From positions 62,001 to 126,000 of the forward strand of contig MU619243.1 in assembly GCA_025201805.1 (NCBI GenBank): a stretch of 64,000 bases of DNA, written 5' to 3'. Origin of the DNA: Parasitella parasitica NRRL 2501. Its lineage: Eukaryota > Fungi > Mucoromycota. The position numbers were made by a program, and so were the translations under genes. The notes under the pieces are model-generated. The model had not been told where the DNA came from, searched no databases, and was given only the letters and a program-made list of their open reading frames with translations. Within the stretch, counting starts at the first letter, position 1. Each line of letters opens with the position of its first letter. Shown in pieces: positions 31,119 to 50,501 of the stretch.

Positions 31119-34100
31119 ATGAAGGACAATGCTATTCCTCTCGAGTTGAATACAGGCCAAGGTGCTAATAGGTTCAAGGTAAGGAAAATTACTGTGAGGA
31201 ATCTGTCAAAGCTTCAACGACGATTATGTAGTACCAAAATTTCAAAACAAGAGTTGAACTCCTCAAGGTCGATGTCGTCCGTAGATCAAGAGTGGTTGAT
31301 GACGAACCCGACGAACATGGCTCCTTCTTTTACGAGGCATTAATGGAATGGAAAGACTTGAATATGACCAGAAACTTTAAAGATTTTGCCCGAGAAATAA
31401 CACCACTTGTCAAATCATTACCTTCAATCATTTATCACAAAGATACTATTGTCAGCATTCTCGAAAAGCACCTTTTAGTCAAAGATAGTATGGCATTGGA
31501 TGGGCTGTTAGAGTAGGTTTTAAGAAAGTGAATCAATTGAGATGTTGAAAGTAACCAATTGTTTGTATCTTCAGCTTGGTCACTAAGCTTGCTAAGGATT
31601 TGGAAGGTGAATTTTATCCTTACTATCCCCGCATGCTTTCCTGTGTGTTGCCGTTAGTATATCATCAAGACATCAAACTTTTGGAGGTAAAATTAAACTT
31701 ACCACAGCATTCAACATATCCGTCGACTAACATCGAGCCGTAGAGTGTATTCAATTGCATCGCATATCTCTTTAAATTTCTCTCCAGACAGATTCTCCCA
31801 GATTTGGATCAAACATTCCAGTAAGTTGGGGGGGGGGAGTTTTTTTGACATAACAATATTCTTATTTTGCATCATTTGTAGTTTGTTGACCAAACTATTG
31901 GGTGAGGATAATCAAGCAAAGCCTTATATTCGACATTTCACAGCTGAAGCGTTTGCTTTTCTGCTGCGCAAGGCTCGAGGAACTGATTTAACAAAGATCA
32001 TTAAATGCATCATTGACGCCCTGAAAGCAGAGCCAGCGCCACAATTCGAGGAAGGTCTGGCCATGTTGTTTTTCGAGTCTATCAAGGTAAGTTTCAGCCC
32101 GCTTGTCTATGCCTCGTCGACATTAACCAGGCCATTGTGCAACAGCAAATCGACCACCGCATTCACTCCCGAGGCGAAGCTATATACAAGGAGTTATTAG
32201 TTCAATCGTGCAGCCAAGGCATTGCAGCTGATGACATAGAAAAAAGCCCAGTTCACAGCCTGTTGACGAAAACAACGCTGCTCACACTTCACCACACCTA
32301 CAGGCAACACTTTACACCCATAATCCAGATTGTTTTAAATGAATTAGAACGACAAACGAAGAAAATGGACGAAAACGTGATTGCTATTCCAGTGTCGCTT
32401 TTAACAATGATTGTCACTGTCCGCAAAGGGAGCCGTGTAGAGGACTTTAAGCCTATCATTGCTGCCATCCAGGACTTGGCAAAGCTTATTTTCAGCTCCA
32501 AAGCAGACACATATTCCAATTATTTGTATACTCAAGTGCTTTGCTCTGTTGTGGGCGCCCTGAGCCATGGATCTTTGGAAGCAGCAGCCAGTGGCGGTCG
32601 AGTCATCTTGGATACGCTCGACTCCTTTGACGATATCGAACTTATTTATGGCTTTTATCTTTCTTTAGCCAAACTAAAGTGGTCCAACTACACTCAAATC
32701 TGTTTACCGCACATCATAAAGTACAGCTCTACGCATTTCAGTAAGTATCCGTACGAGACCATCCTATTCTTGTCCGAGGTGCTCTCCACAGATGCACTTG
32801 CCTTGAACCCGGGCACTTTATCGTCTTCTCTTACTCCAGAAGGACTTTTGCGATTCCCCAATGTGGCCTCCAATGGTGGGAAGACCATCGTGGAAGGCAT
32901 ATTGGACTTGTTGGGCAAGGATTACGATTGGAAGACAGAAAGAGACAGATTAAATGCTACAGATATGAAGGTAAGAGGAGCCCTGCGTATATGTGTGGGT
33001 TTATTTACCAAACGTTTTTACCAGGCTGAAGAATCGACCATGTCTGCTATCACCATTCTGGCTTCTGCTCTTCGCTTGCTGCCTAAAGTCCATGTTTCTG
33101 TCGACAAAGTCTTTACCGTCAGCATGTCATTATTCGTCTCCCTTTCAGACTTTTTGAAAAAGAACGCCGGCAATAACGATTTGATAGAGACACCGTTTGT
33201 ATTAGCACACGAAAATTTCGTGCTGGAAACCTTGATGGGTCTTGTTCTTGAATCACTGGCTGGTATTGCCGCTAACAATGCAGCTGTGTTTAAGGAAATG
33301 AAGAATATCCATGGTAAGCTTGTGGACGAGGTTTTGGTGCAGCACTCTCGTAATGAGGTTGTTCTCTCTGGCATTTACCGCTATTTGGATTTGTTACATT
33401 CTGGGTATGCGTGTTTTTACTATTAGAATAAGGGGGGGCAACGCTTACTGATTTCCTCCATGTCAATAGAAATGCAGATAAGGAAAAGTTCTCACTGCAA
33501 AAGCTCGAAAAGCTCTACCCAGTCCTCAAGCTCAACTTGAGCTCTTACAGACGCAACTGTCGATTGAACACACTCAAGATTATCGCGCTGTTTGACCAAC
33601 CCATAATGAAAACAGATCAAGACCACAAGCTGCCGGAAGTGTCTGATATTGCTAGAATTGCACTCAACATGGAACAAGTCGATGCCAGTTTCAAAGATTA
33701 CCGCGATAAGGTTGTGCTTATTCAGAAGCTCAACTTGATCACCAGTAGCAAACGCACGCCCGACTTGTATGTTGAATTCGCTCCTCGATTAAGTTTGGGC
33801 ATCCTCACTGTCAATTTGCGTCCTCTGTGGGACGAAGCAAAGAAACTGCTTGTTACATTCTCTCAGGTCAATGCTGAATTGTATTGGGATTTGATGTATG
33901 GAGAGATTCTTAAATACAATGATGAAAAGAGCCTCGTGTGGGATGGATTTGCAAGAGACGTCTTGACCAAACTAAATTCGCCCGATGAACCAGAAAACAC
34001 CAACGCTACCAAGACTGGCAAGATTTCTTTTGAGTGCCCTACTTTAAATACCTTTACCCACATGGAGCATAGAGCTTGGAGCATTATAAAGACCGAGAAG

Positions 34101-37100
34101 GCGCAAAGCCTGGCCCTGTTGTTTGCTGGATTGAGCCAACAAGCGCAAGGTCATATGGATTTTTGGAATTACTACACTCTGATGCTGCTCACACTGAAGG
34201 AAACGCCCACCATCACTGAAGCCAGAGGCCGTAATTTGGTCGTGCTGTTTTTCCACTTTTTGGAAACTGAATTTACATCTGCTCCTGAAGACGAAGACGA
34301 AGACAATGAGGCAGATGAAGACAAGGATAGAGGTGATACAACACATTCGGGGCACCTCGAAATACTACCAAGAAACAGTAAAATCATAAAGAACAAAATG
34401 GCAAATTGGCTGGCTTTGTTTGCAGTATTCAAAAACACAAGGGCTGTATATAAATCACATGAACTGAATGCTGCTTTCATGCGCATCATTGCTATGGGTG
34501 ACGCCAAACTTCAGCTTGCTGCCATGGAGTGCCTCTTTACGTGGAAGGATCCCAACATTAAACCATACGCCGACAATCTGCGCAATTTGGTCGACGATAT
34601 CAAATTCCGCGATGAGCTTACCACATTTATTCAAAACGAAGAACAGGTTCTGATTGATCCTGCTCACCGACAAGGCTTAATGCCTGTTGTGATGCGTGTC
34701 TTGTATGGTCGTCTTATCCAGCGAAGCAAAGCATCCAGCAAGAGCAGCAAAAATGCACGAAGAAAGATCATCCTCGGCGGTATCTCATGCTGTAAGCCTG
34801 AAGAGATCAGAATCTTTATTGATCTCGCATTGGAACCGTTCAAGCCCATCTTGGAGCTGTCAGGCGTGGAAACTGATCAAGAGGGTAACGTCACGTCATT
34901 CGATTTCGCTCCTGAAGGCTATCATCTCATCGAGCAGATTGCTTGGAGAAAGCAGACTGGTCTTTTGAATATGATGGAAGATACCATCAAGCAATTCGCT
35001 ACACACATCTTGCCGTTCCTCCCTGACCTACTGAAGGTCCTTTTGTACATGATCAACTTTGCTCACGGCCGCAAGGCTAAGCACGATGAAGATGCTATGC
35101 AAGTAGATGAAGAGGCAGGCTCAGAACAGAGTAACAAGTCGAAGCAGGTAAAGGCTTTGGCTTTGAAGCGTATCGTAGACGTTTTCAAGATCAACGGCGA
35201 TTTCAACTTTACCCCGTTTATTCCTTGTCTGTTTTCCGCGTTTATTTCTGCCCGCCTTCCTACGTTGCCTACTGATGCCTCTCAGGATTTATCAACATTG
35301 GTCAATCTCTTCTTGGTCTGGTCCAAAAAGAGCACATACGCCCCTTATTTAGTCGATTACGATGACCGTGTCATTCCCCAGATTGTTGCGACGTTGTCTG
35401 TCAAGAGCTTAAGCGAACATGTACTGAATATATTGCTGGAAATCTTCGAGTCTCTCTTGAGCCTCTGTGATGATGAAATGGACATTGACGGCGAACACTC
35501 GTTGAAAGAAAAGCTAATCATCCCTCATGTTGATCTTATTTTGAACCATCTCAGGTTCCGTCTTACACAATCTAAAGACGACAAAAAGTTCAGCAGTGGA
35601 CGTTACTCTGTGCGCGAGATCTCCATCACTGCTCGTGTTGCTCCTTATACCAAGAATGGCGAGCAAGCGGCTACTATTATTGAGCTGTTGTTGCCCAGTC
35701 TGAAGAAGCCTTCTCGTACGATTCCCGAGAAAACCAAGCAGGATATTTTTACTATTTGGGCCAAATTTATCCGTATCGTCCCCGGGTTTGAAGCTGGTTC
35801 TCCACTTTATCATCACTACTATGTGATGGCTTCGTCCATTTTTGCCACTGCTTATTCTCGCGAGAGTCGTGTGGGCCTATTGGAGGTTTTCCATGCTTTT
35901 GCTATAGTGAATCCTGAACTTGCCAAAGTAGATGAGCTTTTGACCATGCTAAATGCGTATTCTCAAAAACGTATCGATGAACCCGACTACGATGCCATGC
36001 TGGATGCTTTGAGCGCCATAGGTGAAACCTATTATGACAAGTTTACTGTTCATCAATGGCTACCTATCTTGCATCAAATGTTCCACTGCATGCACAATGT
36101 CGAAGAAATGGCTATCCGTGGTACAGCCACGCATTGTATGTCTCAATATCTCAAGGCCACAGCGGAGCAAACTGACGAAGAAGAGAAACGCAAAATGCTT
36201 GGCTACGTGAACCATGTAGTGTACCCTGCCATAAAGCGTGGCCTCCGTTCTCGTGTCGAGCTTGTTCGTATGGAGTTTGTTAGCTTGTTGTGCGCCTGTA
36301 TCAAGAGGTTTCCTGAGTTGCCCATTTTCGAAGACATGGTTCCCTTGCTGGGCGATGGCAATGAGGAAGTCAATTTCTTCAACAACGTTTATCATATGCA
36401 GATCCATCGTCGTGTGCGTGCATTGCTTCGTCTTTCAGAATTTGTTGAAACTGGCAAATTAAAGGTTGCAACAATCAACAGCATCTTTATTCCCATCATT
36501 TCTGCGTTTTTCAAGGAAAGCGATCGTACAGTTGACCACAACTTGCTCCATCAGTGTACCTTGGCGCTCTCTTCTCTGGCCAAAGTGCTCCCCTGGAACC
36601 ATTATTACCGTCTGCTCCAAAACTACCTGGGCTATATCAAGGAGAACGACGAAAAGGAGAGACTCTTTGTTCGTGTGGTCATTGGCATTCTTGATGCTTT
36701 CCATTTCGATCTGCAAAATATTGAATTATCTGACGAAATCGTAAAGAAGATTATGGGCCGCCAGAAGGTCAGAATTGACTATCTTACCAACGAAGAAATC
36801 ATGAAGCAAGCTGCCAAAGATGCTGGCAAAGTGCCCGAGGAAGATGTCAAGAACGCTGAGCATGATGACGACGAAGATCAAGAACAAGTCGAAGCAGCTG
36901 ACACCGAGACTGAAGCAAAGGACAAGAACGAAAAAATCCATGACATCCTTGTTTCAAAAGTCATGCCTGAACTCAACAATCTTCTGAACAACAACAAGAG
37001 CAGAAGGTCTGTCATTGTGCGTGTTCCGCTTGCTCTTGGTATTGCTAAGCTCTTGTGCCATCTCCCTGAAAAGTCAAAGCGTGTCAACTTGCCTGGTCTT

Positions 37101-39878
37101 TTAACATCGGTGTGCCATATTATTCGCAGCAGAGCCCAGGATGTCAGAGATATTACTCGCGAAACACTTTTCAAAATCAGTGCTTTCTTGGGCGCTTCTT
37201 ACTTTAACTATATTGTAAAAGAACTTCGTGGCGCTCTCAAGAAGGGCTATGAGCTGCATGTGTTGGGCTACACTGTCAATGCTTTGTTGCTGGATATGAT
37301 GCCTCGTTTGAAGGTGGGCGATTTAGACTACTGTTTGCGTGACCTTGTCGATGTCCTTGTCAACGACATCTTTGGAGCGACCGGCCAAGAAAAGGACGCT
37401 GATGAGATGACACGCAAGATCAAGGAAGCCAAGAGTCGTCGCAGCCCTGCGTCGTTTGAGCTCATTGCCAAAATCACTCATTTCAAGAATGTGGGTCTAC
37501 TGCTTGTGCCTCTCAAGGACATTATGTCCAATACTGAGAGCAGCCGCATACTGCGCAAGGTCGAAGACTTACTTCGCCGCATTGCGCTCGGTCTGGTCAA
37601 TAATCCTGAATTTGAATCATTGGAATTGCTTGATTTCGCCTACAATCTGATCAACGAGAATCTTGATGATTTCAAGGCTCAACCCAAGACAAAGGTCAAG
37701 AAAACACAAAAGGAACTGAACTTTGAAGTGCAAATGAAGCGTGTCATGGTTGAGTCTGTTGATCACTACCGCACAAATGCTTTCCGCTTTGTCTACTTTG
37801 GCCTCAGTTTGCTCTCGTCTGCCATCAAAAAGACCAAATTCGACTTGGCAAACGATGAATACATTTCTCGCTTGAGAAAGCTGGTCAATGCCGTCGGTAA
37901 CACGCTATACGCTAGTCAATCTGCCAACGTTGTTCTTGCTGCGCGCATCATGTGTCACTTCATCCCCATGAAGATCCCCAATATCCAGTCCGCTGTTGCC
38001 GTCTCTATTGAGCGCTCGTTTGCCCTCATCAAGTCGTCTGGCGGCTCCCAAACAACTACTGTTCAAGCATGCCTGCGACTGATAACCGTTTGTATACGAG
38101 ACAACGATAAATCGTCGTTGAGTGAAGCTCAGCTGACCTATATCCTCAATTTCGTTCGCCCCGATATGGAAGAGTTGGAAAGACAGGGCATCATCTTTGC
38201 GCTGATCCGTGCCATCATTTCGCGCAAATTCATGGCTCCAGAGATATACGAATTGATGGACTCTGTGTCAAATGTGATGGTGACAAATCAAAGCAAGGAG
38301 ATCCGTGAGCAAGCTCGCTCGGTGTTCTTTATGTTCCTGATGGATTATCCCCAAGGCAAGGGTCGTCTCAGACAGCAAATGAGCTTTATCGTCAAGAATC
38401 TAGAGTATGTCTATGAAAGCGGTCGCGAGTCTATTATGGAGCTGCTGCATCATATTATCTCCAAGTTTGGCAGCGAAATTCTAGCAGACTACATCGACTC
38501 CATCTTCTTTGCCCTGGTTATGCGTTTGATCAACGACGAATCTTCCAAATGTCGCGAAATGGCTGCATCCTTGATCAAGTCTCTGTTTTCTCGCAGCACT
38601 GAACGGTTACCCACTTTCTATAAACTTCTCAACAAGTGGCTTGAACAAAGCAGTAAGCCCAACTTGCAGAGAGCTGCATGCCAAGTGTACGGCTTGGCTA
38701 TTGATACCTTTGGAACACAATTGCGTCCTCAAGCAGCCGGTTTAGTGCAACGCCTTGCAACTATTCTCCAAGCTAGTCGTGAGCGTGCTGACGAATTAGC
38801 TCAAGAATATGATGCAAAAGAAGAACAAGAACAAGAGCAAGAGCAAGAGAGTATGGACATTGACACTCAGTGGGAGGTGACATACTATGCTATCAATACA
38901 TTTGCAAAGATCACCAAGACATTTCCCAAGATTGTCTATGACCAAGAAACTGAATCTGTGTGGCGTGGTATGCAATACATGTTGCTATACCACCATTCTT
39001 GGATCCGCTCATCTTCTGCCAGATTATACGGCGTCTACTTTTCTGGAATTGATGCTGAAAGCCGCATGATCAAGGATACCACCACAAAGTGCACCTATTT
39101 GGACAGAGAAACACTTTGCACATTGGCTGCTGACTTTTTGGAACAGCTAAAGAGCAACCATGTCACTCAAGATCAGGCAGATCAAATCGTAAAGAATTTG
39201 TTTTTCATTGGCAAATGTTTCTATTACATGCCAGACAAAGAAGACGACCATGATGCCGAGGAGATCAAGATTGATGACGCTCGTGACGAAGTTTTAGACG
39301 AAGAAAAGGGTAGCAAGGCTGCTCAAGATGCTTTAGCCAAGATTGCGCAATCTGCTCATAAACGGTCTCTCAACTGGCTATTTAGAAAAGCATCGTTCGA
39401 TGCTCGCGGTGCCGCCATAAGAAAAATCAAGAGTGCAATTATCCTGGTAAGTTGACCTCCCCACCTTCCCCAAAAAAAAATCCATTATTAATGTTCGTAT
39501 CCAAATTTTCAGCGTTCCTCCATCTTCAAACTGTTTGCTGCCATTTGCAATACAATGACAGCAGAGGAAATCCCTCCTTATTTGATGCCTGTCATCGCTC
39601 CTATTTATCGCACTGTTAATGATGAACAAAACAAGGCCGCCGGTTTTGAGGCTCTTCAGCAGCTCGGCAACGAGGTTCTCAATCTACTTCAAAATAAGGC
39701 AGGTCCTACCATCTATTTTGCCGTATATCAGCGCGTACGCCAACAAGTCATCAAGAGTAGAGAAGAACGTAAATCAAAAGATGCTATTTTAGCGATATCA
39801 AACCCTGCTCTGGCGGCAAAACGTAAGCTTGATAAGCACCAGCGATCCCAAAACAAAAAGAAGCGGGCTCGCTTTTGA
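31119..39878 (+). CDS. UTP20: U3 snoRNP/SSU processome component Utp20 (HEAT/DRIM repeat protein); ~9 exons
   Basis: N-terminal RFK/FQNFKTRV..., SFFYEALMEWKDLNMTRNF..F, KPYIRHFTAEAF, FFNNVYHMQIHRRVRAL, LKKGYELHVLGYTV, FLMDYPQGKGRL, LEYVYESGRES and C-terminal PALAAKRKLDKH. Confidence 0.96.
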
Positions 39879-40029: not shown

Positions 40030-41060
40030 TACAATCTTTATTAATATATAAACATTAAAATAAAACTACATAACTATGCACTTCTTGGTTTTTATGGTAC
40101 TACATGTACCATAATACTAACACAATCAACCGCGAGAAGGTGAGTGCACATCTGATTGCAGCCCCCAGAACTCAAGACACCAGCTAGGAAAGGGTAATTA
40201 CTTCCCACATTTACCGGCATGGAGGACCAAACGCGCTATCTAACTAAGGTTAGGAGTAGAACAAGTTGAATTGTTCTTTTTAGTAAACCCTAACTAGTAC
40301 TAGTGCTGCCCGCCTACTTAAGTGCATTTACTAACATCAGCTCCAATCTGCGAGCCATATGTCTCCAGGGATAAGCCTACCTTCATTTCCCTGTAGTTTT
40401 TTCCGGCTGGCAGACAGAACACGAGCGGTAGATCTTCCCCTAAACCCTATAATGTTCGAAAAATGTGAGCATAAGGTTACTCGGATGGTAGGGCAGAGCC
40501 TTTCACCCGATGTTTGTGTTGGACAAACACTACTCGCATTATTTCAAGGGTTAGCTTTACAAGGGAGCCGACTCCAAGTAACCAGGTTGGATCTGTACAC
40601 ATGCATAGCCGGTCCTTTAGTCACGTTCTTGTAGATGTTTTCAGGCGTGGTAAAGAAGAAAAAGAAAAAGAAAAAGAAAAAGAAAAAGAAAAAAGAGGAA
40701 ATGGAAACTCATGGAATAACCACCCGTTTTTTCATGAAAACAAGTCTCTTTCCGCAGCCATCTTTGAATGTGCTATAGGTGTGGGTAAGGCGAGTAAAGA
40801 GCATTCATACTGCTGTCAGTTTGACTAGCGTTTAGATCTGTGTTATACAACGGCAGCTTTGACATCCACTATGGTTCCACATCTTTGATGCATTTGGTAG
40901 TAGAATGTTCTTTCTTTTAGCTCCTATCCAAAACAACCCTGTAATTCCTTCAGGATTGGTTCCGAAAACAAAGCTTGTTTTAACCAAGCAGATAGCTTGA
41001 AGGTGGCTCAAAGCAAAATGTATTTTGGGAGCACTCTTACTAGACCCATAGACTTGAAAG
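40030..41060 (-). ncRNA. Candidate ~1-kb structured long non-coding RNA (identity unknown)
   Basis: TATATAAAT at 41082-41090 and AATAAA at 40037-40042 on the minus strand. No minus-strand ORF of 60 aa or more in the ORF track. Many hairpins and long-range stems whose mismatches become G-U pairs only on the minus strand. Confidence 0.45.
40658..40693 (+). repeat. (GAAAAA)6 microsatellite
   Basis: Six tandem GAAAAA units. Confidence 0.9.
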
Positions 41061-41172: not shown

Positions 41173-44100
41173 CTACCGCGAATCATCTTTTTTGACTGTG
41201 CGTCTCTTTTCTAGTGTCAAATTTGAAGAGTCTTGACTGCTGCCAGCCGATGGAGACAAAGCCAATATATTCGATGAGGCTGTCCTTCTTGTATCGGCTT
41301 GCAAAGCGCGGTCAAGAGATCGAAAAATCTCATCGTCAATGTAATACGCTTGAAACAATCGTTCCAGCGTGTAAATCCTTTCTTCGATGAGTGCCATTCG
41401 AAGTTCACTGCCTCTTTTGCCTGTCATTTCAGAAAAATCAACGATAGGCGATGGCGATAGCAGACAATTCTTGTTTTCCTTTTTATCTGTTGGAATGATC
41501 AGCGGATGAAGCCCATGTTTTGAGGTTGATGAAGCATTGTTTGGTTGATCAAAGTATTCAGTGTGCGCACTGATGTTTTGAGGTGTGTTAATAGAGGAAG
41601 ATATAGAGAAATCGCTCGTTTGGCGCTGCACTGGTTGTGCAGATGATTGTTGAGCAAGGGGCAGATGGGTTGAAAATGCTTTTATGGTAGACGGAAAGAA
41701 ATTAGTGTGGAGTCCATTCAAAAGCGACAATCTAAATTGACCAAAGGACCATCGATGCATATATCCCCATGGTGATCTCGGTCGATAGCCAAATAAGCAT
41801 GTTTGCAAGCTAAACAGTAGGCCAAATAGGCCACCAAAAATGCCAATTGCATTAATAAATGCAAAAGCTTTCTGCTCGCGCAGTACTTTTGTTTGATAGT
41901 TCGACGGAAATACGTGCAATGATCCAAACGGTTGCGCAGAACTTGCTAGAGGGTTATATTCCATCGCAAATGACTCGGAAGCTGTCATGGTGTCTATTTC
42001 ATAGTGAGTGGTGACAGCAGGGGCGATACCAATGTAATTCCATACGCTTGTTTTGAGTGAAATACGTTTGATCAGCTCAAAGCTGATGGTGCTCATCAAC
42101 TGTGTGCTTAGTCGGTATGCGTTTTTAGAGGCTTGTCCAGCAAGGTCGTATTCAGCGCGGTACATGTTTTCCTCCTCGATGCTATCCCACTGAAATGCTA
42201 AGGATGTTATATTTGGTATGGACTGGCTTAGCGTAGATTTGTATAGCTCCAAGTTGGGGTCGTGCAGCCTATTGTATAGTTCTATCTTCACCTGTCGCTT
42301 ATTGTCAAAAACTGCCGTTTTGTTTTTACTTGTACTGTAATAATCAAATTTAAGGAATGATCCTCTGCTGTTGAGTGTTCGTTTAGATAATTGGCCCAGG
42401 CTAAACATAGATGGTGCCCTGAACAAGGAGCAGGCAGTATGTGTTCCATCGGCATTCGTTTGTGTTGGTAGCTTGTACAAGAAATCAGAACATTGGGCTC
42501 CGAAATCAGTTGAGCATCGAATAGTAGGTTCATTAGCGTCCTCCAAGTTTTCAAAGCAGAACTTGACATCTATATACTTAGGATGAGACCTTTTTTTTTC
42601 TCGTGCACTGCAACACACAAGGAATTTTACCTGGGACATCAACTAGCATTTGTTCACTTGATTCGTATGACAGTTGATCTATGGTAGGGCTATTCAAGAC
42701 TTGGCTTGTCAGCGTGAATATCAGATAAATAAAGAGCATCAGAAACAGTGTCTTTAGTAATAGCCTGGCTGATTCAGCCCAGCCAGGTTCTCCTACTCTC
42801 GGTTGCCACACTTCTTTTTTCAAGCCTTTGTAAAATTGAATAACTTTTGCATGGAATCGCTTTAATCCAAAAGTCCATATTGCAATGATATACAAGAAGA
42901 TAAATGCTGACAAAATGCAACCAATAGCTATCCAAATCACGGCGCTCCTTAGGCTGCCATTTTTGTTGAAGATTGAATTTACAATTGCTTTCTCTCCCAG
43001 GCCTCTTGCTGTTGCTGGCGGCTCCCACATCTCTTTGGTTATGTCAAATACATGAAAATTATCGTAAGTCGTTTGATAGTTGATCCCTGTTCAAAACGAA
43101 ATCAATGGTCTGTAAGATTCTTGTTATGACAAGTGTTTACCGAAACCAAACACCACTTTTGTTGCGTTAACTAGGGATATAGAGGAATGCGATTGAGGAA
43201 GAGGCTGGAATATCGATGACTTTGGAACTCTCCATGTCCATGTATCTGTGTCAAGGATTGCTGCCATATTTTCTAGTTGACTTCTTTGACTTCCTATATA
43301 TGTGTGATATGGTGCCTGAACATCATTTTGACCTACAATAGTTACATTTAGTTTCATATAGAGACCTGAATCCTTGAATACTTGCCTCCACAGATGAAAA
43401 TACTATTATTTGATCCTAAATAAAACGATTAATCTTTTGTTGACGTTATTTTTTTTTTTTACCCTTTGTCAAATTTACCCAACACTATTGCGCTGTGAAA
43501 TGTCCTTTCTTTAGGTATATCTCCATTTACCGCGGGTGGGGCGTTCCATTTTGATGGAATAGTATCGAATACTGCTATATCATTCATGCTGAATAACTGA
43601 AAGTTGGCTTGATTTTTACCTTGAATTGCGCTAAAATCATTTGCTGCGCAGTCGTAGCCACCGATTATTACCATATTTCCATCACTTTGATGAAAAAAAG
43701 AAATAGTTAAGCGAAACATATATGTAAGCTGCTTCACTCGTATTTTACCTTAACATGCTTGCAGTATGTCCACAACGTGGTTTGATGCTAGTGGGAACAT
43801 ATAATTTCTTCCACATAGAGCTTGACAAGAAATACATCCAAAAATCATTTTGAGGGCTAGTAGTATTTCTACCACCAAATATATAAACATCATTGCTGTT
43901 CAGTGACGACAGCGCAACTGAATGTTCTTTTCTGTACAAGGGAATGTCTGTTGTTGTGGATTCAACCTTCAACCATCCGTTTTTAGTGCGCACATCAAAC
44001 TGAAAGACAGATAATTGAACTGGTATGCTGTAATTTCTGCCATTTTTGTCGCGTTGTTCATCCATTGCAGTTGTAAAAATAGCAATACCATCCAGCCTAT

Positions 44101-44446
44101 TTGCAGGTACTCCAAATGAGTCAGGAAGATATGGCTGGAAAGCACCGTTTTCCAGTGTTGGCTGCGTGTCATTCGTGGCCTGGTTATCCCAATTAGATGA
44201 AACAATGCTGCTAACTAGTGGTGTCAGGGGCGTGCCGGTGATTATCTCGTTTGAAGAAATTGGCCATACACTACTGGTGATATTTTTGTTTATCGTAGCT
44301 GTCTTTGATCTGCTAAAGCCATATAGGTAGATTGTGTTATTAATCGTAATTGCTGATGAGCTACCAATAATTGATATTCCCTTACTGGAGGCCGTGTTGG
44401 GATTTTCGTTACTTGACATCCATTTTGGTGATTGCTGGAACTCCAT
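41173..44446 (-). CDS. Kelch-repeat beta-propeller fused to a DEG/ENaC-like two-TM module (3 TM in total); ~6 exons
   Basis: Kelch motifs RKEHS...VYIFGG, PRCGHTA, MVIIGG, ERTFHSA, IFICGG and PQSHSS...VFGFG. Exons join in frame to TM0 (VIWIAIGCILSAFIFLYIIAIW), TM1 (LLLKTLFLMLFIYLIFTL), VPDVKFC and EQKAFAFINAIGIFGGLFGL. Confidence 0.8.
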
Positions 44447-44776: not shown

Positions 44777-46473
44777 TTACTTTTTTGCGCGAGGGTATAC
44801 TTTGCCTATACGAGCAACACTCTCTGCAATTCCGACACTCTGACCACTGAATTGATAGACGAGATAAAAAGATCTAAAGAAGGGGCCGCCTAAAAACACG
44901 TTTACGTTGTCTGTTCCGCCAGTAATAGCTGAATAGCAGCTATCACTGCTAGCGCTGCTATTAGGTCTGTCATCTTCCAACTTGTAAATATACTGTTGCG
45001 GGGGGATTTCAGCGTCAATGCCTGCGCCGAATTGGAATACTAGCGATGGGGCTGTAGTGTATGCAGAGCATGAGATGGTATACAAATTCAGGGCCTCATT
45101 GTAAATTGCGCCAATGGCTTTGTTCATTGCGTCTGCAGTACTCCTAGGCACTGTGAGCACAGGGCTGCTAGAATACACCTTTCCATAAGCCCCTGATTGG
45201 AATGAAAATTGCTGATCTGTCTTTTCTGTCGAAGTGTTGGTCTGCTTGAATCTGAATCCCTGAATAGGAATCTTCCAAAATGGAGAACTAAGGTCGGAAA
45301 CAGGGGCTAATGGCAATTGATAAATAGGGCCTGTATACAATGAATCATCTATGCCTAGTATATGTTTGAATTAAATAACAAAATTTTCTGTTTCCAACAA
45401 GTGCATCGTAAATTACCTAAAATCCAAAAGAAAGAATTTAAAATAGAATCCAGAAAAGGGCCTCGTTTTCTAAAGTTTGCAGATCCAGTCGTGTCAGCTC
45501 CTGTAGAATAGCGATCTTCACCAGCTAATGTCATTTATGAGAAAATCTGCCGATTTTGATAGGTAAATGCTTTCTATATATCTACCTGCCCTTCTTGCTT
45601 TAAAAGCACCAGGAAACAATGCAGACGGTATTTCCTTGGGGTCCACATTGAATCTTGTTTTGGTCCAATCGATACTTCCAAAATCACCCATCCCGAGTCT
45701 TGCATCTATGTATTATACAAGAGCTTTTTTAATGCATATTGAATGTCGCAAACCAGTATATACATTACTAGCAGGAGGCAAATATCCCTTGGGATAATCT
45801 ACTTGATAGGCTTCAGCTATTAAATGAGGAGGAAAGGGAATGTTTTCAAATTGCATGACATCCTAACACGCACATATATATATACTAATTAGCACATAAA
45901 TTATGTCTATATCGCAAAGTGAACACCTACAAGTTCAGGCTTAAGTTGGACATGTGTACCATCAAGATAAGAAAGATCAACTCGAAGAGGAAATTTATAG
46001 TTTGTTGAAGATTGATTTGCATGGAATTTTGTATTGTCAGGTTCTGCTAAACAAGCACTTGACGTACATTGATCAGACATTACCCAAGTTACTGGGGACG
46101 CGGTATCAAAGATTCCAACAAAATCTTGTTTTGGTGTACCTAGATAGCCAGAGAAAATAGTCAATAATCGATGTCTTTTAGTATAAATAGGCTATTGGTT
46201 TTACCAATGGAAAAGGGCAATGTGGGCTATAATCATGAGTCAAAGTTAGAATTACGAGCAACTATATAAACTAGCACCAAAAAGACCTACCACTCCTCTA
46301 ACGTATTTCAAGGGAATTCGAGGTGGATGTATTCCATACTTTGGGAAATTGAATATTTGATCTTGGATGGTAGGAAATGCTGGAAATGTAACAGCTGCTG
46401 AAGATGATGAAATGATTGCTGAACAGGTTGCAATTATCCCAATTATCAAGGATTTGTGATTGATTTTGCTCAT
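44777..46473 (-). CDS. Secreted pepsin-family (A1) aspartic protease homolog, predicted catalytically inactive; multi-exon
   Basis: Signal peptide; SIGTPKQDFVGIFDTASPVTWV; GFLGF..FWILGIDDSLYTG; second lobe GKVYSSSPV in place of DTG; CYSAITGG..VFLGGPFFRSFYLVY. Confidence 0.85.
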
Positions 46474-47881: not shown

Positions 47882-50501
47882 TTACAGATTCATTAGAGGT
47901 GTATGCTGTGTTCCTTTAGGGTATACTATTAGTGTGGCCAAGAATAGGCCGAGCGTAATACCTAAAAAAAAAAAAAAAAAAAAGTGTTAATATTCCGTTA
48001 TGCATTTTAAAAACAAAACACTTACCGATGGAAGCTTCGATCATGGCTAATGCAAAACCAGCACCTTGAGTTCCAACTTCATCTGTACCACTAAATAGAC
48101 CAATTGCAGCCTTCAAGCCCAAACTGCTAGGCACAAGATAAAATACACCTAGCAATACCGCGTCAAACGACATTTTGCCTGTAAACTTTGATAAGCAGTT
48201 GCCAATGAGGCCCAAGCCGAATGAAGGAACGACTTGAAGGATTTGAGATGGGGCATGTGCCCAGCATGCCAAAGAGTAATTGATTAAATAGCCACAAGCT
48301 GAGACGGAAGCCATGATAGGCCATCTTGGAGGACGTGCACGCAAGTAAACACAATAAGCAGTAGCAAATAGCGGAACCATGAGAAAGTTAAACCATTGAG
48401 ATTCACTCGAGATACAAGTAGTTGCACTGGATGCTAATTTGCAGACATCGCTTTGAGTTGTATTAGCAGATTTGTCCATAGTCATGTATAGCTCAGATCC
48501 CATAGAAACACCATAACCTAGCAAAAACGAATAAATGATGGCATACACCATACGAACGACACCGCTCACTAGTTGCCTAGAAACCAATTCAATGATCGCA
48601 ACTGCCATTGGGTAGCCTGGCAACACAATGATGAAAGAGGAAAATGCAATGGGTGTAAAGCAAAAGCCAAACTTCTGTATCCCTCGAGCGACAAATCCGA
48701 TTAATATACAGACAGTAATCTCCCAAATAGGTTGGAAACTAGAGATAGCAGCAGAAAAGATTTCATTTGAGGCAAAAACCACTGGTTAAACAAATAGTTA
48801 GATTTATACACAGACACATTTAGTAATAAGCGAAAACACTTACTGCCAAGAGCTGCTGCCACACCAGCTTCTTGCCATCTACCTCCGTAAAAAAGCACGC
48901 AGCCAGAGAATGCAGCTAGAGCATACACAAATGGGTGTAACCAAAGAGGGTAGATAGGCGGTTGATTGTATACTTTATCAATAAATTCCAAAGCTTCATC
49001 CACAGATACTTCGCCATGAGCAACCAATTTCTCCAAACGGTAAATATCTGCCAAGCGATGCATTTCGAACGTCTGCGATTGCCGAATAAAATGTGTTTCA
49101 GTAGTATGAGTGGTAGAATCTATAAACGTAACCAACATAACATTGGGTATAAAGACATATTCAGCATCCACGGCAAGTGTGCGAGAAACTTGACGCATGG
49201 CATATTCTAACCGATGAGCTGGACAGCCATAAAGCATCAAAGATTTACATAATTTGCGCAAAAACTCTTGCTTTTGTAGAATATTGGCAATTTCAAAGGT
49301 AATTCGAATACGATCTTCAAGCGTTATAGGTTCAAATTGAGATGCGGTGGTCAGCATGCTATCGTTGGAAGATCTACGAGAAAATGACGGTGCTACGGAT
49401 TTCTTTCGTTTTTCAAGACTAGGTACGACATATTTGGAAGAGGCTACACCCGCAAGCCAACTGCTAGGTCGATTCACTAATGGCGGGCGTTGCGGTCGAT
49501 GCGTTGGAAGAATATGGCCTGAGGCTTCTGATAAGGGATCAGTGTTGGAGTGGAGAGGGTAATTAAGTAGCGAAGAGGGTTTATTTTTCTTGTTACGTTT
49601 CATTTTTAACGCCTTCGTTTTTTCAACACAAAAATACAGTACGTGAGTATCAGTATACAAATTTAATATATTAAACATTGGTAGCCCAGCTTACATTTTT
49701 ACTCTTTCTACGTTTCTTCCTCTTTTCTCCATCTTGTCTTTTGACTTCTAATTTCATTAAACTGGCTAGAATACTACCACCACCTAGGCTATGATGAGGC
49801 GATTGTAATTCAACTTCTTCTTCATGCTCATGCTGAGTATGTCTACTATGCATTATCGTGCCAAGAGGATCAGGTGTGTGGTGCTTATGGCCTATTTTAG
49901 TACTCAGCATTCGTTGTACCAATGCTGCCGACTCAGCAACGTGGTCATGGAACCGAACATGACGATCTTTGGCTTCATCCTTATCTAAAGCTGCTTCGAC
50001 TAATGTATTGGCTGCAGAGTCATCCAAAGAAAATTCTGCTTTATGGTGATCATTATTCAAAGACGGCAATTGACTCATTGCCCTCGACGCATTGGGGCTA
50101 TCAAAAGACGCATCTCGATGGTAAGGATAAACGTTAACGGTAGCACTCTCGCTATCAGTATCGGTGGTAATGGTTTCATTATCGGTACTTGTAAAAGCTG
50201 CACTTTGTCTTTGCTGGCATTTGATATCTGGATGTAACATAGCTTGAGATGAAGAAACACTCGAAGGAACAGGAGACTGTGAGACATCTACAGGTTCAAG
50301 GACATGACATTCTGTACTGGTAGTCAAGGCTAGTTCGGGCAATCTAGGCCACGAACTTGAAGATTGCAATGTGTCTGGTCTGACAGGTGAGGCAGGAGTG
50401 TGGATGATTTCTTCATCAATGCCATTGCTTCTGTTACTGCTTTCATTGTCATTTCCCCGATTCTTCTTTTTGTTATTCTTTCGCTTGAAAAATCGATCCA
50501 T
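47882..50501 (-). CDS. PRM10: Prm10/DUF1212 (ThrE threonine/serine exporter family) membrane protein; ~4 exons
   Basis: GGSILASLMKL, RIRITFEIANILQKQEFLRKLCKSLMLYGCPAHRLE, VLPGYPMAVAIIELVSRQLVSGVVRM and GITLGLFLATL; about 10 TMs. Confidence 0.9.

Follow-up and report, generated by a model that had tools for sequence, protein, structure and literature searches.

Channels of the ASIC and ENaC type are treated as an animal invention. The hallmarks of the DEG/ENaC group are an ectodomain of about 370 amino acids (aa) with thumb, finger and knuckle helices, about 14 conserved cysteines, an HG motif before the first transmembrane helix (TM1) and a G-A-S belt in the second (TM2). PAC, the proton-activated chloride channel also named ASOR or TMEM206, is linked to ASIC by its fold and not by detectable sequence, and a basic residue at the inner end of its TM2 sets anion selectivity. 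PAC has been described as trimeric and as "related" to ASIC (PMC9779784). Outside animals, DEG/ENaC homologs were reported from a filasterean relative and heterokonts only, and BLAST of Fungi gave no candidates (PMC10507113). A survey of pathogenic fungi also listed ASICs as absent (PMC3410928). Our literature search, incomplete in its coverage, turned up no published account of a fungal protein with the ASIC/ENaC/PAC fold, nor of the family described here. The gene in question lies on the minus strand of a stretch of 64,000 nucleotides (nt) from the mucoralean mycoparasite Parasitella parasitica NRRL 2501 (GCA_025201805.1, contig MU619243.1, positions 62,001 to 126,000), hereafter the window, whose own numbering is used for all positions. 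It encodes a Kelch propeller followed by a membrane module that is predicted to share the core fold of these channels. An earlier note, made from the letters of the window, had read this module as DEG/ENaC/ASIC-like and inferred a divergent fungal ENaC-like channel.

Predicted fold and its closest relatives

The encoded protein comprises a six-bladed Kelch propeller, an extra transmembrane helix (TM0), a basic loop, TM1, an ectodomain of about 255 aa, TM2 and a tail (Table 1). Kelch repeat profiles scored above their cut-offs and gave a six-bladed propeller, with Pfam Kelch families in exons 1, 2 and 4. The public model of the gene is P0059 (Parasitella parasitica BD408DRAFT_428407, hypothetical protein, 972 aa), which is 100% identical over the last exon. 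Its hydrophobic helices are located at residues 400-425, 454-483 and 742-764, where hydropathy agrees with the modelled helices. The P0059 model also contains a helix at 430-445, a beta-rich domain at 487-738 and tail helices.

A fold search with the full-length 972-residue model returned Kelch matches only, as expected, so the fold of the module was judged from a separate model. The protein modelled was P0011, a naturally occurring homolog of 439 aa whose sequence begins within TM1; it is 52% identical to the window protein. AlphaFold2, run on an alignment of 125 sequences and with no templates, gave a mean predicted local distance difference test (pLDDT) of 81.8 and a predicted template modelling score (pTM) of 0.70, with blocks above 90 from TM1 to TM2. 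Foldseek against the PDB placed PAC/ASOR/TMEM206 first (E 1.9e-9 to 7e-8, target TM-score 0.45-0.52), and the next matches were ASIC1, BRTNaC1, PDPNaC1 and ASIC2 (from E 5e-7). The aligned part covered 230 of the 262 residues of PAC and about 243 of the 424 of ASIC (about 57% of the ASIC chain). These structure matches take in the module from TM1 through TM2, and the next fold scores 3 to 5 Z units lower. P0059, folded separately, showed the same order of elements (pLDDT 77.3, pTM 0.71). These models predict with confidence that the TM1-ectodomain-TM2 module shares its palm/beta-ball core fold with the trimeric channels of the ASIC/ENaC and PAC types. The earlier note had named the lack of a palm/beta-ball-like fold as the outcome that would speak against it; such a fold is present in the predicted structure, with PAC and ASIC as its Foldseek matches.

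It is very improbable that this assignment is an artefact of structure prediction and that the module is an unrelated membrane protein. The module has no solved structure, and its sequence identity to ASIC and PAC is only 9-14%. Against an artefact stand the pLDDT above 90 across the module, obtained from the 125-sequence alignment and no templates, the agreement of the independent P0059 run, the distance in Z units to the next fold, and a weak but independent signal of the Pfam ASC family at the matching place.

Assembly was modelled with three copies of residues 1-310 of P0011, using no alignment, in three runs and with three controls. The interaction prediction score from aligned errors (ipSAE) was 0.49 (median of the three runs), against 0.00 for the best control. 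At least 63% of contacts were shared between runs, and the partner pLDDT was 62 or higher. Confident contacts were made by the strand at 486-493 after TM1 and by TM2 residues 744-755. The TM2 contact positions map to N744, G747, G750/G751 and G754, which form one helix face on the axis, as expected of a pore-lining helix. In the calibration, which was made on two copies and not three, 21 of the 30 proteins with a solved same-chain pair reached the ipSAE mark, and none of the 23 with a solved single chain did. Among eukaryotic proteins 17 of 29 reached it, but only 1 of the 7 without an older solved relative. The three-copy result supports a likeness to ASIC/PAC, without proving assembly. The trimer interface for which the earlier note had wanted a check is present in the prediction, which passes its controls.

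Conservation was read over 136 relatives. The motif W-x-P-R-x-G-E-P-x-W-A-E precedes TM1, and S-P and P-D-[IV]-[RK]-F-C follow it. Further conserved motifs are D-P-N, W-N-Y-x-G, R-E-Q-K ... G-x-x-G-G-x-F-G-L in TM2, F-G-Y-R-P-R-S-P-W-G after TM2 and L-F-x-A-Y-Y-I-D-D-E-V-F in the C-terminal helix. The ectodomain cysteines C509, C523, C531 and C551 are kept in at least 90% of these relatives, and likely form two disulfides. R767 and R769 are conserved directly after TM2, giving R-P-R at its inner end. TM1 and TM2 carry no acidic residues. The positions that follow GGxFGL in TM2 vary, and read LFSLQ in this protein; the G-A-S belt is absent, and the earlier note was right to read LFSL in its place.

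At the level of sequence, the signal of Pfam ASC (PF00858) is real but sub-threshold and confined to about 60 residues. On exon 6 the profile reached E 0.02 and 14.4 bits at profile positions 370-442 of 455. The stretch it aligns is REQKAFAFINAIGIFGGLFGL at 41788-41880, which the earlier note had correctly picked out as a pre-TM2/TM2 stretch. When 50 family members were scanned singly, 16 matched ASC (best E 3.2e-4), although these matches are not independent because the members share the motif; other families matched at most five members each. A six-frame ASC scan of the 32.8-Mb genome gave a single match, a paralog on contig C96 (E 0.006, 18-20 bits). Neither the window protein nor the C96 paralog reached the curated cut-off of 23.6 bits. 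The earlier note had compared VPDVKFC with the FPAVTxC motif that DEG/ENaC channels carry after TM1; P-D-[IV]-[KR]-F-C is kept across the family and lies outside the alignment of the ASC profile. No HG motif was found in the pre-TM1 consensus.

Pfam TMEM206 (PF15122) was absent from the 25 most-matched families of the 50 members at E up to 10. A six-frame search of the genome with TMEM206 gave no match, which is weak evidence since the profile was silent in all control genomes too. Exon 6 and a profile of the 50 members gave no match to any PDB chain at E up to 10. A search of the ESM Atlas returned the family's own Mucoromycota clusters and no structure. As a side observation, the ASC profile exceeded its curated cut-off in the six-frame control genome of Thermotoga maritima, which could be a bacterial ASC-like sequence or a false match.

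Compared with DEG/ENaC/ASIC (ASIC1 6ave and 9e4a; ENaC 6bqn; FaNaC 7yvb), the predicted module shares the TM1-palm/beta-ball-TM2 fold. The fungal ectodomain falls short of the ASIC one by about 115 aa and has three short helices, with most of the thumb, finger and knuckle helices absent. The fungal protein has four cysteines and lacks the HG, GAS and acidic TM2 residues. DEG/ENaC subunits have cytosolic termini and two transmembrane helices, whereas the fungal protein has the third helix TM0 and an N-terminal propeller. Could the protein nevertheless be a true but very divergent DEG/ENaC member by descent, with amiloride-sensitive sodium conduction of the ENaC/ASIC kind? The ASC signal points that way, but every ASC match is below the cut-off, the post-TM1 motif is not aligned, the hallmark motifs are missing, four cysteines stand against about 14, and PAC scores equal or better over a larger part of its chain. 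We regard this descent as unlikely, and the DEG/ENaC assignment of the earlier note was not upheld.

The likeness to PAC (PDB 7jna, 7sqg, 9lhm) lies in a compact subunit with two transmembrane helices and a beta-rich ectodomain of about 250 aa, a layout also predicted here. What the fungal protein has in addition is TM0, the Kelch propeller, the conserved set of four cysteines in the ectodomain and a long cytosolic tail that is also conserved. The PAC structures matched are all vertebrate (human, bovine, Xenopus), and the fungal family was found here in Mucoromycota only. A PAC/TMEM206-like anion channel would be a minimal trimeric channel of this layout whose TM2 ends on the inner side in a positive ring, for which R767 and R769 would be the candidates. 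This identity is improbable in our judgement, since the TMEM206 profile was silent in the 50 members and the genome and the weak sequence signal favours ASC instead. Because ASC is sub-threshold, TMEM206 is nil and the hallmark motifs are absent, we treat the protein as a separate family with a shared fold and file it under neither DEG/ENaC nor PAC. A large, diversified fungal family of the same fold would deepen the history of that fold, and might bridge ASIC/ENaC and PAC.

Gene structure and the Kelch fusion

The gene runs from an ATG at 44446 to a stop at 41173-41175, according to the listing of open reading frames (ORFs) and direct reading. In a local check of frame and length, the six-exon model had 992 codons with one terminal stop. 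The joined model entered this count only; searches and folding used single exons or the database proteins P0059 and P0011. Four of the five introns are GT-AG, and the intron 43385-43333 is GC-AG with a strong GC-type donor, GCAAGT.

Transcript evidence came from the contigs of one public run, X1, whose RNA label is presumed. One contig, 100% identical, joins 42569 to 42631 and reads ...VDVPDVKFC...; this is exactly the joint by which the earlier note had created VPDVKFC after TM1. Further X1 contigs match at 100% identity on 41278-41807 and 42777-42946. The note had called for RNA across two junctions, of which 42570-42630 was shown and 43087-43140 is uncovered by X1 contigs. Support for the intron 43087-43140 comes from its GT..AG ends, the reading frame and three annotated orthologs (P0059, P0203 and P0005). 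P0203 is the ortholog from another strain and is 80% identical.

Exon 5 holds the last Kelch strand (YDNFHVFD) through TM1 without interruption, so the fusion of Kelch and membrane parts is independent of any single splice call. Dozens of annotated proteins from Mucorales and Umbelopsis show this architecture too. Since exon 5 spans both parts and the fusion recurs in the annotation of dozens of species, a single gene encodes the Kelch and the channel-like part. This agrees with the joining of Kelch repeats to TM0 that the earlier note had proposed.

The micro-exon (exon 3) is absent from both public models of the gene, P0059 and P0203, and one Kelch blade is broken in the annotated proteins. 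Its inclusion restores the Kelch motif hhhCGGQ, which is found at the same position in the Mucor homologs P0005, P0014 and P0036. At the other end, the C-terminus of P0059 reads ...DDSRKDI, whereas the open frame stops after ...DDSR (41173-41185, minus strand). An extra small 3' intron was seemingly placed there by the annotators of P0059, in a region with no RNA cover.

An X1 contig spanning 43839-44138 skips 48 nt at 44023-44070, inside exon 1. On the plus strand the skipped part starts with GTATGC and ends with TTGCAG, as a canonical intron does; in the sense direction its ends are CT..AC. This points to antisense transcription, with splicing, across the Kelch exon. A strain deletion is the alternative, since the skip is in frame (16 aa).

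Topology and a candidate channel mechanism

A signal-peptide-like hydrophobic N-terminus was found in 38 of 86 full-length relatives, including the Parasitella paralog P0219, and the propeller of these 38 must be lumenal or extracellular. In the propeller of the family, the observed/expected ratio of N-x-S/T sequons was 1.44 with a signal peptide and 1.59 without one. It was 1.2-1.5 in the ectodomain and 0.8-1.0 in the tail, and the TM0-TM1 loop held 2 sequons against about 10.6 expected. The sequons N36 and N194 are retained in 54-72% of relatives, signal peptide present or not, and the ectodomain cysteines are (near-)invariant in both groups. The loop between TM0 and TM1 carries 8 lysines and arginines, and the 15 residues following TM1 carry none.

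From these sequence patterns the propeller is most likely extracellular. The earlier note had placed it outside by the positive-inside rule only; the signal peptides of relatives, the sequon distribution and the conserved N36 and N194 now point to the same side. Its description of the propeller as rich in N-x-S/T holds for the family but not for this protein, whose own propeller has 7 sequons against 6.4 expected and shows no excess.

The note had also seen no signal peptide, which is correct for the protein's own clade. A further exon upstream that would encode a signal peptide was rejected: the ORF cannot extend past 44446, the aspartyl protease gene ends at 44777 and leaves 330 nt, and Mucor orthologs share the N-terminus MEFQQSPKW. 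On the midpoint-rooted tree of the module, whose root is provisional, the clades lacking a signal peptide nest within a wider set that commonly has one.

Among Kelch proteins, KLHDC2, KLHDC3, LZTR1 and muskelin are cytosolic adaptors and attractin is the exception. For the propeller here, the prediction is an extracellular position, N-glycosylation and an anchor, TM0, that connects it to the channel-like module.

We lean slightly towards the view that the protein is a three-pass membrane protein whose module represents a third family of the ASIC/ENaC/PAC fold, with a trimeric pore gated via the propeller and ectodomain. The six-bladed N-terminal propeller would lie outside the cell or in a lumen. 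TM0 would carry the chain into the cytosol, where the short basic loop (W-PR-GEP-WAE) would lead to TM1. The compact beta-rich ectodomain would come next, and TM2 would return the chain to the conserved cytosolic tail. Three subunits would surround a common axis, with the small residues of one TM2 face (N744, G747, G750/G751, G754) and the first post-TM1 strand as its lining. Such a trimer could form an ion pore, gated by movement of the ectodomain. The covalently tethered propeller may supply the stimulus, as a binding site for a ligand or wall polymer or as a transmitter of wall strain. An ENaC-type sodium filter is disfavoured because TM1 and TM2 lack acids and R-P-R lies at the inner end of TM2, which leaves an anion or unselective pore possible.

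Several points weigh against this view. Fold, trimer and topology are all predictions, and a shared fold does not imply a shared function. The trimer test was free of alignment and of modest pLDDT (62-65), and its pass may reflect memory of solved ASIC/PAC trimers. The sequence links lie under every curated threshold (ASC 14.4 against 23.6 bits; TMEM206 and the PDB profile search nil). The protein's own clade has no signal peptide, and a propeller of 400 aa would have to cross the membrane via TM0, which is unusual. X1 cover is missing over 42972-43790, including the junction 43087-43140 and the micro-exon.

The same fold could also serve a protein that is not a channel. It might be a trimeric surface receptor or wall-stress sensor that acts via the tail, or a cargo receptor of the early secretory pathway like Erv41/Erv46. 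The structural score of the module to Erv41p was 7.9, much weaker than the 10.8-13.2 for ASIC and PAC. The test for Erv41/Erv46, by the ERGIC_N and COPIIcoated_ERV profiles and the lumenal beta-sandwich, was negative, and no ERGIC/Erv Pfam family matched. Erv41p/Erv46p (ERGIC2/3) also lack the conserved glycine-rich TM2, whereas the most conserved membrane feature of the fungal protein is the TM2 glycine face, on the predicted three-fold axis. All solved proteins of the better-matching fold are channels. A non-channel role is, on this evidence, quite unlikely.

That the family is both a working trimeric channel and a third ancient branch of the fold, with a propeller that gates directly in most members, is a larger claim and a tentative one, which we rate as rather doubtful. 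If the third-branch channel reading is true, the fold predates the split of animals and fungi. If gating by the propeller is true, the tether of the model put forward for degenerin mechanosensors of animals would here be built into the protein itself. Joining a propeller predicted to face outwards to the module via an extra helix gives an architecture unseen in known channels, and with it a simple and testable gating model.

Family range and neighbouring genes

The Parasitella parasitica genome contains five paralogs. A full HMMER scan of 1.84 billion representatives (a library at 50% identity) gave at least 155 clusters at E up to 0.001, and all named clusters were from Mucorales, Umbelopsis or Glomeromycota. 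Two profile searches of a set of 5.8 billion proteins found Mucoromycota only; they scored the best 8000 word-sharing candidates and say little on the true range. The family is so far restricted to Mucoromycota. Mucorales include agents of mucormycosis, and a candidate surface channel specific to this lineage is of interest in this respect as well as for basic biology.

Stand-alone members of 420-580 aa, with two transmembrane helices and no Kelch or TM0, occur in Ambispora (P0172, P0235, P0236), Dentiscutata (P0192) and Cunninghamella (P0193). They have the plain layout of ASIC/PAC. On the midpoint-rooted tree, with its provisional root, these members branch deepest, and the tree so rooted hints that the Kelch-TM0 fusion arose later than the stand-alone form.

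Table 1. Coordinates of the gene, its encoded features and the neighbouring genes in the window
Feature	Position	Strand	Basis or remark
Whole coding region, six exons, about 992 aa	41173..44446	-	
Exon 1: N-terminus MEFQQSPKW, no signal peptide, Kelch blades 1-3	43749..44446	-	Pfam Kelch families; N-terminus conserved in orthologs
Exon 2: Kelch blade	43479..43684	-	Pfam Kelch families
Exon 3: 30-nt micro-exon, encodes (G)SNNSIFICG(G)	43386..43415	-	Translation; hhhCGGQ motif in homologs
Exon 4: Kelch blade	43141..43332	-	Pfam Kelch families
Exon 5: last Kelch strand, TM0, cytosolic loop, TM1, first ectodomain strand	42631..43086	-	Uninterrupted
TM0, extra helix joining propeller to channel-like module	42869..42946	-	P0059 residues 400-425
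Predicted basic cytosolic loop, motif W-x-P-R-x-G-E-P-x-W-A-E	42785..42868	-	Conservation, hydropathy
Pre-TM1 helix and TM1	42695..42784	-	P0059 residues 454-483
61-nt intron, removal gives VPDVKFC	42570..42630	-	Spliced contig of run X1
Exon 6	41173..42569	-	Frame check
Predicted ectodomain, mostly beta, four conserved cysteines	41860..42688 (includes the 61-nt intron)	-	Residues 486-741
TM2, N-x-x-G-x-x-G-G-x-x-G face on predicted three-fold axis	41791..41859	-	Residues 742-764; Pfam ASC aligns here
Conserved motif after TM2, predicted cytosolic, FGYRPRSPWG..HRWS.G..R.SL.	41698..41790	-	Conservation
Conserved C-terminal helices (..EERI..LERLFQAYYIDDEIF..L)	41266..41412	-	Conservation, P0059 model
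UTP20 (PF20416, E 3.4e-84)	33537-39455	+	Neighbour
Pepsin-like aspartyl protease (PF00026, E 3.2e-17)	44777-45340	-	Neighbour
ThrE-family membrane protein (PF06738, E 3.7e-17)	47916-48782	-	Neighbour

The neighbouring genes for UTP20, the aspartyl protease and the ThrE-like protein show no evident link to the gene and give no hint of its function. In the downstream intergenic region, at 40514-40828, simple repeats give EKEKEK and KKKKK runs, depending on the frame.

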